Program-made: the position numbers and the translations under genes
Part shown: positions 4,866 through 55,942 of the stretch, in pieces
How positions within the stretch are numbered: position 1 is the stretch's first letter
Layout: the number at the start of each line of letters is the position of its first letter
From: Anolis carolinensis
Taxonomy: Eukaryota
Assembly: GCF_035594765.1 (NCBI RefSeq)
Contig: NC_085844.1
Span: 60,341,923-60,405,922, forward strand
Reading direction: 5' to 3'
DNA: 64,000 nt
Notes under the pieces: model-generated
What the model was told of the DNA's origin: nothing
Databases searched by the model: none
Seen by the model: the letters and a program-made list of their open reading frames with translations, nothing else

Positions 4866-5124
4866 AGCCCCCAGTGGGGCAATGGGTTAAACCCTTGTGT
4901 CAGCAGGACTGATGACTAAAAGGTCAGCAGTTCGAATCTGGGGAGAGGGGTGAGCTCCCATCTGTCAGCTCCAGCTCCCCATGTGGGGACATGAGAGAAG
5001 CCTCCCACAGAATGATAAAACATCAAACATCCGGGCGTCCCCTGGGCAACGTCCTTGCAGACGGCCAATTCTCTCACACCAGAAGTGACTTGCAATTTCT
5101 CAAATCACTCCTGACATGAAAAAA
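4866..5124 (+). mobile_element. tRNA-headed SINE with Vingi-related body and tail (contains HDV-like ribozyme fold)
   Basis: A/B-box-like head (agtggggcaatggg; gttcgaatc); body matches the reverse complement of 6098-6192; 3' end tcactcctgacatgaaaaaa resembles the Vingi 3' end at 7771-7797. Confidence 0.85.
4984..5076 (+). ncRNA. HDV/CPEB3-like ribozyme fold (probably inactive) inside SINE
   Basis: P1 ggggac 4985-90/gtcccc 5037-42; P2 tgagagaa 4992-99/ttctctca 5069-76; P3 gcc 5000-02/ggc 5034-36; P1.1 cc 5004-05/gg 5044-45; P4 cgtc 5050-53/gacg 5060-63; J4/2 G-C-C-A-A with catalytic-equivalent C at 5065. Confidence 0.7.
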
Positions 5125-6097
5125 CTGGAAACAATAGGCATGTAACTAAAAATTGTGTGCATATGTACTGTATATGATATTACTTTCTATTGTTTAGGAT
5201 TTAAATTGGGGTCAGGACATGTTATGATATGATGATCCCATATTGGTCCAGGCCTACAGATCAGCATTCCTGTGATTATTCAACCTTGCTATTTGTTGGA
5301 GGAAGTTCAAGACTGAAGTGGTTTGAAGCTGTAGGTTTCAGTAGCAAAGAGCAAAGAAAATCACGGCATATTAAAATCTTCTGGTTATTCTTCCATCAAA
5401 AAGAATAATCTCCATTTGATTGCTGTGAGAATCTTCACTTGAAAAAAGTTTCTATATACAGAAAGAAGTTTGATAAGCTTTAAATAATTCTCTCTTTTGT
5501 TAGCTGTTTCAACAATATATTTATATAAAATTATGGTAGTTATCAAAGTATGCAGATAAAAGATTTTTCCTTAAAAGTATGTACTCTGAAATCCACATCT
5601 CAAGTAACTGTTGACGGAATAAATTGCTGAAAGACCTTATTAAAGGAGTCATTTTTGCTTTGAAATACTACACTTCGTTTGGCTTATGTCGCATATGTGT
5701 TTAACTGCTAAATTAAATTTATTATGAAGCAAAAAAAAAAAATCCAGCGCACAAATGCAAGTCTTTTGAAATCCGGTCCTTTGAGGGATGTTTTACAGAT
5801 TATGTCACTAAAATGCCATTCCTATTCCTGGTTGTTATTCATATTTGTGTTTTTGTTGTGTGCCACCAACATGGATTTGATTTATCATGGCCCTATGAAT
5901 GAGAAACCTCAAAGACCCCCTGTTATTTATAAAGAGCTGTAAGGCCCTTTTGATGACAAAATCAATTTCCTTTATGTGTAATCCAAAAGGTTTCAGAGCA
6001 TGGTCTGTCCTCTGGATGGTGCCTTTTGCATTTGCAATCCCTTCAGCTAAATAAGTAGACTGTAACATTTTACTATGGGACCTCAATTCTAACTTTG

Positions 6098-7797
6098 CAA
6101 GTCACTTCTGATATGAGAGAATCAGCCGTCTACAAAGACGTTGCCCAGGGGATGCCCGGATGTATTTCGATCCTGCAGGGAGGCTTCTCTCATTGGAGCA
6201 TTGCAGCACACCCGAATACTTGGGAGTTAGCCTAGACTGTGCTCTGACCTACAAGAAGCATTGCTTGAATATCAAGCAAAAAGTGGGTGCTAGAAACAAT
6301 ATCATATTAAAGTTGACTGGCACAACCTGGGGATCACAACCAGAGACAGTGAAGACATCTGCTCTTGCACTTTGCTACTCTGCTGCTGAGTACGCATGCC
6401 CAGTGTGGAATACATCTCACCACCTGAAAACAGTGGACATGCTGATAATGAGACATGCTGCATTATCACAGGATGTCCACGCCTTACACCTCTAGAGAAA
6501 TTATACTGTTTAGCTGGTATTGCACCACCTGACATCTGCCAGGAAGTAGCATCCAATAATGAAAGGTCCAAAGCAGTGACATCTCCAGCCCATCCTCTGT
6601 TCAGATATCAGCCAGCACATCAACTCTTTAAATCAAGAAATAGCTTTCTGAGATCTACAGAGATACTTGCAGGAACGTCTCAGCAAGAGAGAGTCCAAAA
6701 GTGGCAGGCTGTTGTGACTCAGCCTTTGTGTGACTCTGATGAGGATTCTGGAATGCAGTTTCAAGATGATGGGATTCAGGTTCAGGATGAGTTTCAAGAT
6801 GACTCTGATGGGAATTATGGGATTCAGGTGCAGAATGTCCCTGCTGTGGGAGATGAGGAGCAGGGAGGCTTTCCCACAGGAAGAAATGATGTTGTTACTG
6901 ATGATGGTTTTCAGGTGCAAGAAGCAGAAAGGGAGAGTAGCTCCCAGCCTCAGCCTGATAACACTAATGAGCCCTGTAGTCTTGAAAATGATGAGGCCAC
7001 TTCTCTAGATTGGGCTAGTCATTTGGAATTTCAGGGGTTGTGCGAAGTCTCAGAATAGCAAATAAAAGGGAGGTCAAAGGGCAAAGAAATGCCTCCATGG
7101 TATGCTATTAAAACAGTCTGCTGAGAGGGAAATCTTCGTCAAGGCAATTTCCTCGCTTGAATCAAGAACCATGTCTGCTTTCCTCTATTATCTTATAGCT
7201 TGGATATATCTTCATTTCTGGGACTTTGGCTTCATTTTAAGGACATTGCTTCATGCGTAATGTTTCCATGGATTTGTACTTACAGCTTTGTTTTTGTAAC
7301 TATCTTTTGGTACTGATCTTTTACCTTTTATGAACTATCTTTTCCTTATTTCCTAATAAACTACAAAAGACTACGATCTGTGTGCAGCCTGGTGGCTTTA
7401 GCAAGGTGAAACTAACCTGAGGTGCGACACAGGCTAAAACCCGGAATCTCAATCCATGGCTGATACCAAATGAGAGACTGCCTTCTGGGCACACAGAAGA
7501 CTGAGTGACTTGGAAGGCATTGAACAGACTGCTCTCTGGCAGCACAAGATGCAGAGACAACCTTAAGAAATGGGGCCACAAAGTGGAGTCCACAACATGC
7601 AAGTGTGAAGAAGAGCAAACCATCGACCACCTATTACAATGAAGTCTGAGCCCTGCCACATGCACAATAGAGGAACTCCAAGTGGCCAGCTACTGGTCAA
7701 AGGACATTTAGTATAATGCCAAGTTTTTAACTTTGGTTGTGTTTTAAATACATTACAACTGTACTCCGGGTTCGCTTCTGATATGATAAATAAAAAA
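6098..7797 (+). mobile_element. 5'-truncated Vingi (Ingi-related) LINE with inverted 5' segment, interrupted by a solo LTR
   Basis: RT C-terminal region (YLGVSLD..LTYKKHC..ALCYSAAEYACPVW..LAGIAPPDI..WKALNRL..C-terminal Cys/His motif), frameshifted; A-rich tail; 13-bp TSD aattctaactttg at 6085-6097 and 7798-7810. Confidence 0.85.
6710..7429 (+). mobile_element. Solo LTR (Gypsy-like), 720 bp, inserted in Vingi
   Basis: TG...CA ends with imperfect inverted termini (tgttgtgactcag / ctgaggtgcgaca); 5-bp TSD caggc at 6705-6709 and 7430-7434; removal restores Vingi KWQA-KTRN; AATAAA near 3' end. Confidence 0.9.
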
Positions 7798-13609: not shown

Positions 13610-14702
13610 TTAATGTGGCCTAGGCAAAACTATGCTTAGGTGGATCTGTAATTGATTAAGTGAACAAACCCAAAAGGTGCTCACCAATGCTTTCTCTTCA
13701 TCCTGGAAAGAAGTGACAAGTGGAGTGCCATAGGGATGCATCCTAGGTCTGGTTCTGTTCATCATCTTTATTAACAACTTAGATAAAGAGTTAGAAGGAA
13801 TGATCATCAAGTTTGCAGATGACACCAAATTGGGAGGGATGGCCAATATTCCAGAAGACAGGAGCAGAATTCAAAATGATCTTAACAGATTAGAGAGACA
13901 GGCCAAAACTAACAAAATGAAGATCAACAGAGGCAAATGCAAGATACTGTACTCTATTTAGGCAGAAAAAATGAAATGCAAAGATACAGAATGGGGGACG
14001 CCTGGCTTGACAGCAGTACATGTGAAAAAGATCTTGGAGTCCTTGTGGACAACAAGTTAAATATGAGCCTACAGTGTGATGTGGCGGCTAAAAAAGCCAA
14101 TGGGATTTTGGCCAGCATAAATAGGAGTATAGTGTCTAGATCCAGGGAAGTCATGCTCCCCCTCTATTCTGCCTTGGTCAGACTACACCTGGAATACTGT
14201 GTCCAATTTTGGGCACTGCAATTGAAGAGAGATACTGGCAAGCTGGAATGTGTCCAGCGGAGGGTGACTAAAATGGTAAAGGGTCTAGAGAACAAGCCCT
14301 ATGAGGAGCAGCTTAAAGAGCTGGGCATGTTTAGCCATGTTTAGAAGAGAAGACTGAGAAGAGACATGATGGCCATGTATAAATATGTGAGGGGAAGTCA
14401 TAGGGAGGAGGGAGCAAGGTTGTTTTTTGCTGCCCTGGAGACCAGGATATGGAACAACAACTTCAAACTTCAGAAAAGGAAATTCCACCTGACCATGAGG
14501 AAGAACTTCCTAACTGTGAGAGCTGTTCAGCAGTCGAACTCTCTGCCCTGGAGTGTGGTGGAGGCTCCTTCTTTGGAGGCTTTTAAATAGAGGCTAGATG
14601 GCCATCTGTCGGGGGGTGCAAATGCAGTTTTCCTGCTTCTTGGAAAGCCGAGGTTGGGCTGGATGGCCCACGAGGTCTCTTCCAATTCTATGATTCTATG
14701 AT
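13610..14702 (+). mobile_element. CR1 LINE, 5'-truncated (~1.1 kb of ORF2 RT and 3' UTR)
   Basis: KFADDTKLGG; EKDLGVLVDNKLNMS..CDVAAKKANGIL; LYSALVRLHLEYCVQFW; tail ttctatgattctatga; stops and frameshifts. Confidence 0.95.
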
Positions 14703-15439: not shown

Positions 15440-15905
15440 TGGTTGTATGTCTTTAAGTCTTCTGACTCACGGTGGCCCTAAAGCTACACTATCACAGTGG
15501 TTTCAAGGGATGTGAGACTTGCCAGGTTCACCCAGCGGGTTTCCATGGCCAAGCAGAGAAATTTTTTTCCATGTCAGGAGCGACTTGAGAAACTGTAAGT
15601 CACTTCTGGTGTGAGAGAATTGGTTGTCTGCAAGGACGTTGCCCAGAGGTTGCCCAGAAGTTTTGATGTTTTTAAAATTCTGTGGGAGGCTTCTCTCATG
15701 TCCCTGCATGGAGCTGGAGCTGATAGAGGGAGCTCATCCGCGCTCTCCCTGGGTTAGATTCGAACCTGGCAGCCTTCAGCTCTGCAACCCAGCCTTCAAG
15801 TCACAAGAGTTTAACCCACTGAGCCACCGGGGGCTCAGCAGAGAATTAATTCCAGGTCTCCAGAGTCTTAGTCCAGTGCTTAAACCATTACACCATGCTG
15901 GCTCA
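15440..15905 (-). mobile_element. MIR-like SINE split by a younger SINE insertion
   Basis: CORE-like acttgccaggttcacccagcgggtttccatggcc before 15552; tRNA-head half after 15845. Confidence 0.7.
15561..15836 (-). mobile_element. tRNA-headed Vingi-related SINE (degenerate HDV-like fold at 15612-15706)
   Basis: Reverse complement of the 4866-5124 family; TSD agcagagaa at 15552-60 and 15837-45. Confidence 0.85.
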
Positions 15906-18176: not shown

Positions 18177-18467
18177 GGAACCCCCAGTAGTGCAGTGGAT
18201 TAAACCACTGTGTTGGCAGGACTGCTGACTTGAAGGTTGGATTGCTGACCTGAAAGCTGCCAGGTTCGAATCCCACCCGGGGAGAGTGTGGATGAGCTCC
18301 CTCTATCAGCTCCAGCTCCATGCGGGGACATGAGGGAAGCCTCCCACAAGGATGGTAAAAACATCAAAACATCCGGGTGTCCTTGGAGATGGCCTTGCAG
18401 ATGGCCAATTCTCTCACACCGAAAGCGACTTGCAGTTTCTCAAGTCACTCATGATATGGGGAAAAAA
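18177..18467 (+). mobile_element. tRNA-headed Vingi-related SINE (degenerate HDV-like fold at 18323-18416)
   Basis: Same family as 4866-5124. Confidence 0.85.
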
Positions 18468-20896
18468 CATGCTTATGCCTATCGCTACAATTGTTTATTA
18501 ACTGGAAACTGTCCATGGACTGGAAGCTCTTGGCTCATAAACCAGTTATCATTCCACAGACCACCACTTTGTGCAGAGAGGGCTTTAATAGCAAGTAGAA
18601 TGGGCAAAATTTGCTCTTTTCCTTTTCTCCAGTGAGAGTCTCCACTGAAAGCCAGTCATTTGAAAAGAAGAATGAGCCAATCTGGTCACACAAAAAATCC
18701 TCTGGATGTAACACATTTGAAATATGCATTTCTACTGCTCTGTCTAATTGGTGTTGATTCACATGTTCAAAATAATAGTTTTGAAATTTGTTTGTACTCT
18801 AACCTTCTTAAACATGCTTGGAGCAAATAAAAATAGAAGCTATTATACGTAAAATATCGAAATAAAGCTCCTATGGTAGATATATGGATAACAACTGTCA
18901 GAAACTTTTCCAGTTTTTAAAATGTAGACTCACACACTATTCGGGAAAGGTTCTGCTTGTGAAGTTGCCCACTTCCTGCAGCTGTTTGGTTGCAATAACT
19001 AGCTTTTGCCATATGGACAGTCGGAAGCCCCATCTGTGTTTCCAAAACATGCTGTGGAAAGAGGTTGTATTACTTCAGTATGTGGGCCAATGGAATGCAG
19101 AATGCATGAAAGCAAATGTACTGACAGGTTTAGCAATGTCTTTAAAAGTCTGTGTTTTACTCCGTGTCCCATTCACTTCTTCAAATACCTTTTCATAGGT
19201 TTTCTTCTCACAATTGTCTTCTACTTCCCCATTCAAAGTTTCATAGAATCACACTGTAGTGTGCTCATATTTTGGTTCATTACAACTGCATACATTTATA
19301 TATTAGGTAGCAAAAAAAACCCCTGGCTGTCCTGTGACTGTTTTATTCAGACAGATGCGAATTCTATGTAACTAATTTAACAGATATGCTTGCCAAATAT
19401 TACAGGATAAGTGACATGATCAACTGCCATATTATTATATAAGAGGATTTGCAGTCTTTATCTTTTGATTTCTTGTGGAAGCAAACTGTGTTTTTTTTAT
19501 CAGTAGAGCCAATGTTTCTGTTTAGCAATAGTGGTTGTACGTGGTAACATATTTTGAAAAGTAAAGCTTATCATATGAGAAACAAGTTTAGCTTTCCACC
19601 AAAATTCATGCTTTCTCCTTCCCCTATTCTTCTTCTGTGTGGCCAGGAAGAGGAGGCCCAATTTATATCAACTACAGTTTAGTTGTGATGGAACCCTCAC
19701 ATGTGGTTAACCCTTACTGTGATTTATTTTAAAAGTCAGATCATAGCTTGATACTGAGTTCTTTCAAACAAATCATAATTAAGAGCAACCAAATCACTAT
19801 GCATCTATGATGATTGTCAGCTATCAATATGAATTCAAATTTGCAATGAAATAGACTATTTACTTTAAGTCAAGTTGATGCAGGTGAATAACAAGACAGG
19901 AAAAACCTTCTGTGTAGCAGTCTGTCAGAAGTAGATGACATGGAAGGTGCATCTTGTCAAAAGCGGTGGGATTGAACGGTCCCATCATATTGGAGATTTA
20001 GACACCTGTAGATGCTAATAATCTGACATTCCAGTTTCTCTGAATGCCTGCCAACTTCCACTAGGTTAGAATGGAGAGAGTCTTTCAGAAAATGGGTACA
20101 GGAAACAAGATCACATCACTGGTAGAGAGCACTTTCTATCTTATCCACTGTTTAATCACTTTGATACCACTCTTTCAGTCTGTATGTTGGTGGGTTGAAG
20201 GTTTAATCAAATTTGTGTTATTATTGTTACTTGTGTTCGAGTCATTATCCAACTTATGGCAGTCCTATCCTATGTCTCATCTACATGGGCCCAATAACCT
20301 TTGCTCACATTGTAGTAGATCCTGGCTGTCTTCATGACATTCTGCACTTCTGATGGGTATTGTCAGGCTAACCCAATTTAACTGTGTTAAGAAAAGTCAG
20401 AGGATACTTTGCCAAAACTCTGGAGTAACCTCACACTTCAGTGCAATGTGGACAGCAAGACTGGATCTCATTTTGATTGGTCCACTGTCCACACAAGTCA
20501 CTGCCACCATTACCTTTTCCCTGTGCTCATTACCCTTCTCCTTCTTGGTGATGTAGTTACCTTTGCTGATATCATCACATGGGGTTAGGATTGTGGTTGT
20601 GGATGCTCCCAAGATTAGTCTAGAAATTTTTTTCCTCTCTAAATCATTTAAAACTATTTTTATTATGCATTTTTGTATTGTGTTTTTATGGAATTCATGT
20701 GTTCATTTAGATACTTATACTTAGGTAATGATTAATTTTATTTTTGTTTAGTAATTGATGTTTAGTTTTGTTTAGTTAATGATGTTTATTTTGCACTGTT
20801 TTGATTTATGTGTTGTTTATCACCAAGACATTGAATGTTTGCCTTTTTTTGCTTGGAAGCCACCCTAAGTCCCCTTGGGGAGATAAGGTGGCCTAT

Positions 20897-25200: not shown

Positions 25201-25944
25201 CAGGCAGTCCCTAAATTATGAACAAGATAGGTTCTGTAGGTTTGTTCTTAACTTGAATTTATATGTAAGTTGGAACAGGTACATTTTAAGTGTAACATAC
25301 ATATATGCATACATAGGTAAAGGATTGACATTGAGTCTAGTTGTGTCCAACTCTGGGGGTTGGTGCTCATCTCCATTTCCAAGCTGAAGAGCTGGAGTTG
25401 TCCGTAGACACCTCCAAGGTCATGTGGCCAGCATGACTGCATGGAGCGCCGTTACCTTCCCGCTGGATATCTATTGATCTACTCACATTTGCATGTTTTT
25501 GATTTGCTTGGTTGGCAGAAGCTGGGGCTAACAATGGGAACTCACCCCGCTCCCCAGATTTGAACTGCTGGCCTTTTGGTCAGCAAGTTCATCAGCTCAA
25601 CAGTAACCCGCTACACCTCCGGGGCTCCATGTACATACATGCAAAAATATAAAAGGTTTGGAAAAGTTAACCTAGAGAAAAGTTAACACCCCTGTGGGGT
25701 TTGTTTTGCTGTCTGTGCCCCTGTTCAGAAGATTTCACCTCATTTTCGGTCCCCGTGATAATTAGATTTTAAAATTTTTTGCTTGTTGTAGAAGCAGGGA
25801 TTGGTGATAAAGCATCAGTGGGGGTACCTTTTCTCCATGATAACCCTTCCAAGTGGTAGATTTTTCCTACTTCCTCTTGTCTCACCCCCATTCTTAACTA
25901 TGGGTCATTTGTAAGTCTGATGTTTGTAACTTGGGAAATGCCTG
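25201..25944. mobile_element. Tc1/mariner-superfamily non-autonomous element with nested Sauria SINE
   Basis: TA|caggcagtccc ... gggaaatgcctg|TA. Confidence 0.75.
25317..25628 (-). mobile_element. Sauria SINE
   Basis: Reverse-complement Sauria body, inserted in a (TACA)-rich tract. Confidence 0.9.
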
Positions 25945-54890: not shown

Positions 54891-55438
54891 TGAAGACAAT
54901 GCTGATGCATAACAGTTGTGATCAGATGCCATAGCTGCACTCATAGGAGCTCTGGTTTATCATAAGATCCAAACCCAGCCACTGTCTTGATTTATACAAA
55001 CTGTTCTCAAGGACTCTGATGTTGAAGAATAAGCAAAATCCCCCTTCCCGTGTGCCAGAAAACAGTATTGTATTTTTGTCCATTGATTATAACTGCTTCT
55101 TTCTATTACTGGTAGCCAATAGATTGCAGATCAGCACTGGTTTAGTGACCACCACCTTGAGTAGCAGTATACAACCCCTCCGTGAAATTGCAGAAAAACC
55201 AGTGAATCAATATGTCAGAAGTATGTTTAATACATACTTTTTATACACAATGGTGCTACTAAAGTGTTGTGATTTTTTTTTAAAGTAGCCTGCAGTTATG
55301 TGGTATTTGGGAGATCAAAGCTGCATTATACATGAATTTACTGCTTAGGAATGACGCTCAACATAAATAGTAGTTATATTATCTCAAGTGAAGTGTACTC
55401 AATACAGGAGAGAGCAAAATTAGAGTATATGGTAATAT

Positions 55439-55942
55439 GGAGCTCCCGGTAGTGCAGTGGGTTAAACCGCTGAGCTACAGAAATTGCTGACTGAAAGGTT
55501 GGCAGTTCAAATCTGCAGAGTGGAGTGAGCTCCCACTGTTAGCCCCAACTTCTGTTGGGGCTAACAGTGGGGCTAGCATGTTTTCGAACTGCTAGGTTGG
55601 CAGAATCATAGAATCGTAGAGTTGGAAGAGACCTCACGGGCCATCCGGTCCAACCCCCTGCAAGAAGTTTTGAATGAGATTTTCCTGCTTCTTGCAGGGG
55701 GTTGGACTGGATGGCCCGTGAGGTCTCTTCCAACTCTACGATTCTGTGATTCTATCATTCTATGATTCTGCCAACCTAGTAGTTCAAAAACATGCAATTT
55801 TGAGTGGATCAATAGGTACTGCTCCAGTGGGAAATTAACGGTGCTCCATGCAGTCATGCCAGCCACATGATCTTGGAGGCGTCTGTGGAGAGCACTGGCT
55901 CTTTGGCTTAGAAATGGAAATGAGCAGCAACCCCCCAGAGGT
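55439..55942 (+). mobile_element. Sauria SINE interrupted by a CR1 tail with templated inverted duplications
   Basis: SINE 55439-55554 and 55766-55942; CR1 tail 55668-55765; inverted copies 55554-55667. Confidence 0.85.

Follow-up and report, generated by a model that had tools for sequence, protein, structure and literature searches.

A hepatitis delta-type ribozyme fold with a hairpin in L3, and without G1, inside a SINE of Anolis carolinensis

The window analyzed here is a stretch of 64,000 nucleotides of the Anolis carolinensis genome (NC_085844.1, positions 60,341,923 to 60,405,922, forward strand). Close to its start lies a SINE copy in which a 93-base block (4984-5076, forward strand) sits between a tRNA-like head with its linker and a tail (Table 1). 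ARAGORN called no tRNA in the SINE head. The stem-loop of the tail has a folding energy of -9.4 kcal/mol (z = -2.8) and is also present in the copy at 15.6 kb; within the window the tail pattern is confined to three SINE copies, and in the literature such a tail is presumed to be the end recognized by the partner LINE. The block occurs four times in the window, and a covariance-model search of the window with filters off revealed no further decayed copies beyond these four.

Table 1. Positions of the SINE, of the elements of its HDV-like block and of the other block copies in the window (coordinates are those of the window).
Feature	Position	Strand	Details and basis
Whole SINE copy: tRNA-like head, linker, HDV-like block, tail hairpin, short A run	4867-5124	+	blastn against other copies; sequence
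tRNA-like head and linker	4867-4977	+	B-box-like GTTCGAATC near 4933-4941; common to a different SINE family
Junction letters	4978-4984	+	4984 is the expected G1 site
P1 5' strand GGGGAC (after T4984)	4985-4990	+	6 Watson-Crick pairs with 5037-5042
Single base between P1 and P2 5' strands	A4991	+	sequence
P2 5' strand UGAGAGAA	4992-4999	+	8 Watson-Crick pairs with 5069-5076
P3 5' strand GCC	5000-5002	+	pairs with GGC 5034-5036; identical to HDV G17-C19 / G28-C30
L3, 31 nt	5003-5033	+	UCC (U20, C21, C22 equivalents), hairpin insert 5010-5032, G5033
P1.1 CC/GG	C5004/C5005 with G5045/G5044	+	sequence; HDV mapping
P3 3' strand GGC (5034-5036), P1 3' strand GUCCCC (5037-5042), U5043 (U37 equivalent)	5034-5043	+	
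P1.1 3' strand GG and J1/4 GCAA	5044-5049	+	identity to L039
P4 CGUC/GACG, 4 bp, loop of 6 nt (CUUGCA)	5050-5063	+	descriptor; pairing count
J4/2 GCCAA	5064-5068	+	C5065 at the catalytic C75 position; A5067/A5068 are A77/A78
P2 3' strand UUCUCUCA	5069-5076	+	pairs with 4992-4999
SINE tail: stem-loop 5080-5113, A run 5119-5124	5077-5124	+	fold; tail pattern
Second SINE copy, block 18323-18416	18180-18470	+	L3 hairpin intact; 2-nt deletion in P1'; P4 mutated
Third SINE copy, block 15612-15707	15562-15835	-	P2, P3, P4 and J1/4 kept; P1 3' strand and L3 hairpin mutated
Headless, more diverged fragment	6096-6193	-	starts at J1/2 and reaches the tail hairpin's first arm; 97.7 bits

Two further elements in the window, at 25300-25628 (reverse strand) and 55438-55580 (forward strand), belong to a different SINE family. 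When aligned, they match the head and linker up to ...CCAGCT(C/T)C (position 4977) and then diverge, with the blastn matches ending at 4976. Since the head is common to this other family up to that point and is followed by divergence, the block and tail represent a separate graft, with a 5' boundary no more than 7 nt away from the G-run of P1. A head common to two SINE families fits head exchange between families. The element at 25.5 kb continues into what we take to be a Sauria-SINE/Bov-B-type body. Directly after the SINE head at 55.4 kb lies a long, near-perfect inverted repeat (55590-55760, from ...ggcagaatcatagaatcgtagagttggaagagacctcacgggccatccggtccaaccccctgcaagaag to its reverse complement), which may be a foldback or MITE-like insertion.

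Family-wide letters were obtained by placing contigs from four public runs on the 4867-5124 copy at a likeness of at least 80% and taking the majority letter at single positions. Between 33,000 and 64,000 contigs per run were placed for two related species and none for a third, and the block-bearing SINE is thus a very abundant family in the two related species. Besides the letters at L3 and at 4984 described below, the variants listed within the block at 5% or more are CpG transitions. The copy at 4867-5124 is itself an inert fossil: a neutral, decaying insertion whose +1 letter is T and whose L3 hairpin carries two G>A changes. Summed contig depth at 5040-5080 (J1/4, P4, J4/2 and P2') is about three times that of the P1/P2 5' strands and about six times that of the head; contig depth cannot rank the parts, and the excess over the 3' half of the block may mean that this half is common to more families or copies. 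In a few contigs the linker is missing and the SINE head (4911/4915) runs straight into the beginning of the G-run of P1 (4986/4989), perhaps reflecting a subfamily whose block boundary lies at P1.

The block contains all of the helices of the ribozyme of hepatitis delta virus (HDV) in their canonical order, P1-P2-P3-L3-P3'-P1'-P1.1'-P4-J4/2-P2', which is the nested double pseudoknot that defines the HDV class, with helices abutting one another. The initial annotation had listed P1, P2, P3, P1.1 and P4, and each of them was found at the positions given in Table 1. The P1 duplex has an energy of -13.1 kcal/mol (4985-4990 with 5037-5042). Positions 5044-5049 together with the flanking 5043 and 5050 read UGGGCAAC, the same as in HDV. 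Two hallmarks of the class, C-G pairs in P1.1 (C5004/C5005 with G5045/G5044) and a catalytic C in J4/2 followed by N-A-A (C5065, A5067 and A5068), are present.

The most conspicuous departure from HDV is L3, which spans 31 nt compared to 8 nt in HDV (7-8 nt being typical); a MAFFT alignment opens a single 23-column gap in HDV, exactly at the L3 insert. As the initial annotation had described, this insert is a hairpin that is imperfect at 4984-5076 and intact in the 18.3 kb and 6.1 kb copies. In the 4984-5076 copy, four of its five pairs can form, with A5011 opposite C5031, whereas all five form in the family majority (GGAUG/CAUCC), in which 5011 is A>G in 95% and 5015 is A>G in 90% of the contig depth. 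The fragment at 6.1 kb keeps the L3 stem as GGAU/AUCC with a loop that is 9 nt shorter. For the U20-G25 reverse wobble of HDV, U5003 is present and G5033 lies just before P3', but the two are separated within a 31-nt L3 that carries the hairpin insert. From its place in the sequence, G5033 could be the equivalent of G25, which is needed for HDV activity (G25A costs approximately 3000-fold; PMC1874588). A search of the literature found no precedent for an L3 of 31 nt, and a loop of this length might abolish catalysis, even in a LINE.

The initial annotation had stated that the fold recurs in the window, and this is true in part only: the other three copies do exist, yet all of them carry damage in the core or in P1 (Table 1). 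In addition to the changes listed there, J1/4 of the 18.3 kb copy has become GGAGAUG, and the 6.1 kb fragment, which is without the P1 5' strand, has G in place of A77. Across the four copies, 83.8% of pair cells hold standard pairs, compared to 34-49% with slid partners; the paired cells amount to 100% for P2, 100% for P3 and 87.5% for P4. Covariation in P1, P2 and P4, which had been put forward as a check, did not materialize, there being no compensatory change among the four window copies. As these copies are young and related, the absence of compensation says nothing for or against selection on the structure.

To see how often such a topology arises by chance, a descriptor with a variable L3 was used (P1 ≥ 6 bp, P2 ≥ 6 bp with G-U allowed, P3 of 3 bp, P1.1 CC/GG, P4 of at least 4 bp, C-N-A-A ahead of P2' and L3 of 6-45 nt). 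On both strands of the window (128 kb), it returned a single match, at 4985-5076. In first-order Markov sequence, the same descriptor matched 7 loci per 22.3 Mb with the composition of the window and 2 loci per 22.3 Mb with that of the SINE, a null rate of approximately 0.1-0.3 loose matches per Mb, or approximately 0.04 expected per window when no core letters are required. At this rate, hundreds of matches are expected at random per genome, and topology is therefore insufficient by itself.

The decisive evidence beyond topology is the identity of the core letters. As the HDV reference we used L039 of the viral collection (1682 nt), which Rfam RF00094 recognizes at 106 bits, and positions were assigned by a helix-based mapping. 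The core letters of the block are identical to those of the genomic HDV ribozyme at 27 of 30 positions: A16-C22, G25, G28-G31, C36-C44 (= CUGGGCAAC), G73-C75 and A77-U79, including GGCnAAU. The assertion that the junctions mirror genomic HDV was thereby checked against a real HDV genome, and the quoted strings agreed. A strict pattern of 25 core letters plus a long L3 matched twice in 241 million metagenome records, and a 23-letter version matched twice in the viral collection (one shared coding sequence). Considered as L3-extended relatives, these metagenome and viral matches were rejected as chance-like, being GC-rich coding DNA without P1 or P2.

For a reciprocal test, the four window copies were turned into a covariance model of P2, P3, P4 and the L3 hairpin, which was run on 18.9 kb made up of HDV and two phage loci. 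Two genuine ribozymes were aligned: that of genomic HDV, in register from end to end (L039:683-778, 15 bits, E = 0.029), and a phage HDV-like ribozyme (L006:1819-1894, E = 0.018). As a separate observation, HDV-like ribozymes of the RF02682 type occur in phage contigs at L003:5308-5388, L006:10-90 and L006:1819-1894 and in many contigs of IMG/VR sample 3300045988; they have the same GCCUCC...GGC......UGGGCAAC core and adjoin tRNA gene arrays, and several of the pattern matches fall below the Rfam gathering score.

Rfam (RF00094, RF00622, RF02682 and others) reported no HDV family for the block at the gathering score, nor at E-values up to 10 on 401 nt, which bears out the earlier expectation that searches with a fixed L3 length miss this fold. 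The nested minimum free energy of the 4985-5076 copy was no better than that of shuffled sequences (z = 0.03), and the global sequence alignment of the block to HDV was insignificant (z = 1.5). With these two measures insignificant and the core and topology matching, the signal lies in the structural context together with the core letters, which is what is expected of a ribozyme family whose helices vary freely. The initial description of the block as a nested double pseudoknot of HDV type, with a hairpin inserted in L3 and a SINE as its carrier, is thus supported by the descriptor, the pairing count, the core letters and the covariance model. The block is a variant of the known HDV-like kind, with its fold, core identity, family letters and graft boundary all observed directly.

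The equivalence of U5043 with U37 places the expected G1 at 4984. This position is T in the 4984-5076 copy and C in two other full copies; in the family, T>C accounts for 57% of the contig depth and T for the rest, with no G among the variants listed; a minor G may occur among 14 weaker ones. The mixture of C and T is CpG decay of a CG. Position 4984 is unpaired against U5043 in all four window copies, and the G1-U37 wobble that closes P1 in the HDV class is absent, because this copy has T and the family majority has C at 4984; P1 consists of the 6 Watson-Crick pairs only. A slipped register, with G4985 in a wobble with U5043, is less favorable than P1 in register by 6.7 kcal/mol. In both HDV ribozymes, G1:U37 is specifically required (PMC1874588). 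Given this requirement, the missing G1 and the costly slipped register, we take the SINE version to cleave weakly or not at all, and its block, judged from these letters, is probably a disarmed relic. The description of the block as a ribozyme variant spread by a SINE is not supported as worded, since the family carries C (T here) at the G1 position and lacks the wobble; most likely, the SINE spreads a copy of the fold with little or no cleaving activity.

Published work on related SINEs offers a source for the graft. The middle and 3' parts of SINE2-1_ACar and SINE2-1B_ACar correspond to the two ends of Vingi-2_ACar, 5' and 3' respectively, and the alligator SINE2-1_AMi independently carries nt 2-74 of Vingi-2_Gav, that is, it starts at nt 2 (Kojima 2018, PMC5786205). 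The same study noted that a ribozyme in the body of a SINE would truncate it at the 5' end, did not include Vingi among the ribozyme-bearing clades and did not describe the 5' part of Vingi as a ribozyme (Kojima 2018, PMC5786205); our literature search found no paper linking HDV-like ribozymes to Vingi or Anolis. The copy at 4867-5124 appears to be a SINE2-1_ACar-type SINE, an assignment made by description rather than by Repbase comparison, and the literature on SINEs of this type suggests that the block body and tail derive from the ends of a Vingi LINE. No Vingi ORF was found among the 133 stop-to-stop ORFs of the window scanned with Pfam. An RVT_1 match at 13734-14341 (forward strand), the only reverse-transcriptase fragment in the window, was considered as a Vingi candidate and rejected as CR1-type. 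This fragment, which probably extends to approximately 15000, shows FADD and LEYCVQFW...VQRR..KM..GLE motifs as well as stops and frameshifts.

The account that we favor, and hold to be fairly likely, is that an HDV-type variant defining the 5' end of a Vingi LINE was passed into a tRNA-headed SINE and has persisted there without G1. Whereas the fold and core letters are observed, the Vingi origin, the cleavage in the LINE and the disarmament in the SINE are points that we infer. Following the literature, the block would have originated as the extreme 5' end of the LINE. In the parent LINE, by analogy with R2, RTE and L1Tc/NARTc, the fold would cleave immediately 5' of G1 in the co-transcript, thereby setting the 5' end of the element. 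A bipartite derivative of the LINE 5' and 3' parts could then have become a SINE behind a borrowed tRNA-type head. In the SINE, with the block behind a Pol III head and without G1, the Pol III transcript would stay whole, such that poor or absent cleavage would keep head, body and tail on one RNA. NARTc provides a precedent for a non-autonomous element that bears the ribozyme of its LINE.

An alternative, which we judge unlikely, is that the folded, non-cleaving block has been kept because it is needed in cis for Vingi-mediated retrotransposition, with possible roles in LINE-protein binding, 5'-end protection or second-strand help. That an extremely successful family retains the whole block and all of its helices speaks for such a role, as does the independent presence of Vingi-2_Gav nt 2-74 in the alligator SINE (PMC5786205). 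Engineered Vingi-1 donor RNAs use the Vingi 5' and 3' UTRs, and the R2 ribozyme fold is said to give cap-like protection (PMC13708176). However, variation in the block is plain CpG decay with no sign of selection, the four window copies contain no compensatory changes, and the block may be retained simply because the SINE arose recently from a bipartite non-autonomous LINE.

We consider it quite improbable that the SINE block is instead an active self-cleaving ribozyme, cut between C4984 and G4985 to release a headless body-plus-tail RNA, either through a slipped P1 (the G4985-U5043 wobble plus three G-C pairs) or through tolerance of C at +1. The family majority keeps the remaining core letters intact, one R2 ribozyme functions with a P1 of 4 bp (PMC3774820), a C at -1 is favorable as a leader base (PMC1874588), and one headless fragment (6096-6193) does exist. 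That fragment, however, begins at the J1/2 equivalent and not at the predicted cut, and among the loose contig ends listed there is no pile-up at 4984/4985. Moreover, the slipped register carries the energetic penalty given above, and efficient cutting would leave every retrocopy devoid of its Pol III promoter, whereas full-length copies are plentiful. Finally, a chance or convergent look-alike, a structured SINE body with no ribozyme ancestry, would agree with the insignificant global alignment, the silence of Rfam, the hundreds of loose matches per genome and the convergence of active-site letters reported in R2 work, but it is made very improbable by the full topology together with 27 of 30 matching core letters set in the proper helical context, by the reciprocal in-register match on HDV and by the near-absence of the strict pattern from huge collections.

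A broader proposal combines elements of these readings: an undescribed HDV-like subclass, with a hairpin in L3 beside the active site, would head Vingi LINEs, and an abundant SINE would keep it in non-cleaving form because the fold is needed in cis. We offer it tentatively, as possible and on balance rather doubtful.

Returning to the favored account of a Vingi 5'-end variant carried into a SINE without G1, cleavage by the LINE version would have several consequences. The range of HDV-like ribozymes would widen to take in the Vingi clade and transposons of amniotes, and L3, which has been treated as a catalytic loop of fixed length, would be seen to accept a whole hairpin, with the result that descriptors with a fixed L3 and the Rfam models would under-count the family. 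The SINE would constitute a natural case of a ribozyme neutralized before a Pol III-driven SINE can carry one, a problem raised only in principle until now (Kojima 2018, PMC5786205). On the practical side, a self-cleaving or tightly folded element would bear on the design of constructs.

Among known systems, the genomic HDV ribozyme (RF00094) has the same order of P1, P2, P3, P1.1 and P4, the same P3 (GCC/GGC), the same start of L3 (UCC), U37-GGGCAAC and GGC-n-AAU with the catalytic C. Unlike HDV, in which P1 has 7 bp and is closed by G1-U37, the block has a P1 of 6 bp with C or U at +1, and it further differs in its 31-nt, hairpin-bearing L3 (8 nt in HDV), in a P4 of only 4 bp and in having no Rfam score. 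L1TcRz of L1Tc/NARTc (Ingi clade) is likewise a ribozyme at the extreme 5' end of a LINE, in a sister clade (given the Vingi origin suggested here by the literature), and in NARTc it is carried, as here, by a short non-autonomous derivative of LINE 5' and 3' parts. The NARTc ribozyme, however, lies at nucleotide 1 and cleaves, whereas the block is internal, behind a Pol III head and without G1, and no L3 hairpin has been reported for L1TcRz. The R2 and RTE ribozymes resemble the block in the 5'-end processing role that may be supposed for its LINE form and, in some R2 elements, in core letters near those of HDV, and they tolerate variation in P1 length and L3 spacing; unlike the block, they have their variable insertions in J1/2 and P4 rather than in L3, and existing descriptors recognize them. 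Finally, by description, the SINE appears to have the organization of SINE2-1_ACar, SINE2-1B_ACar and SINE2-1_AMi: a tRNA head, a Vingi 5'-end body and a Vingi 3'-end tail.
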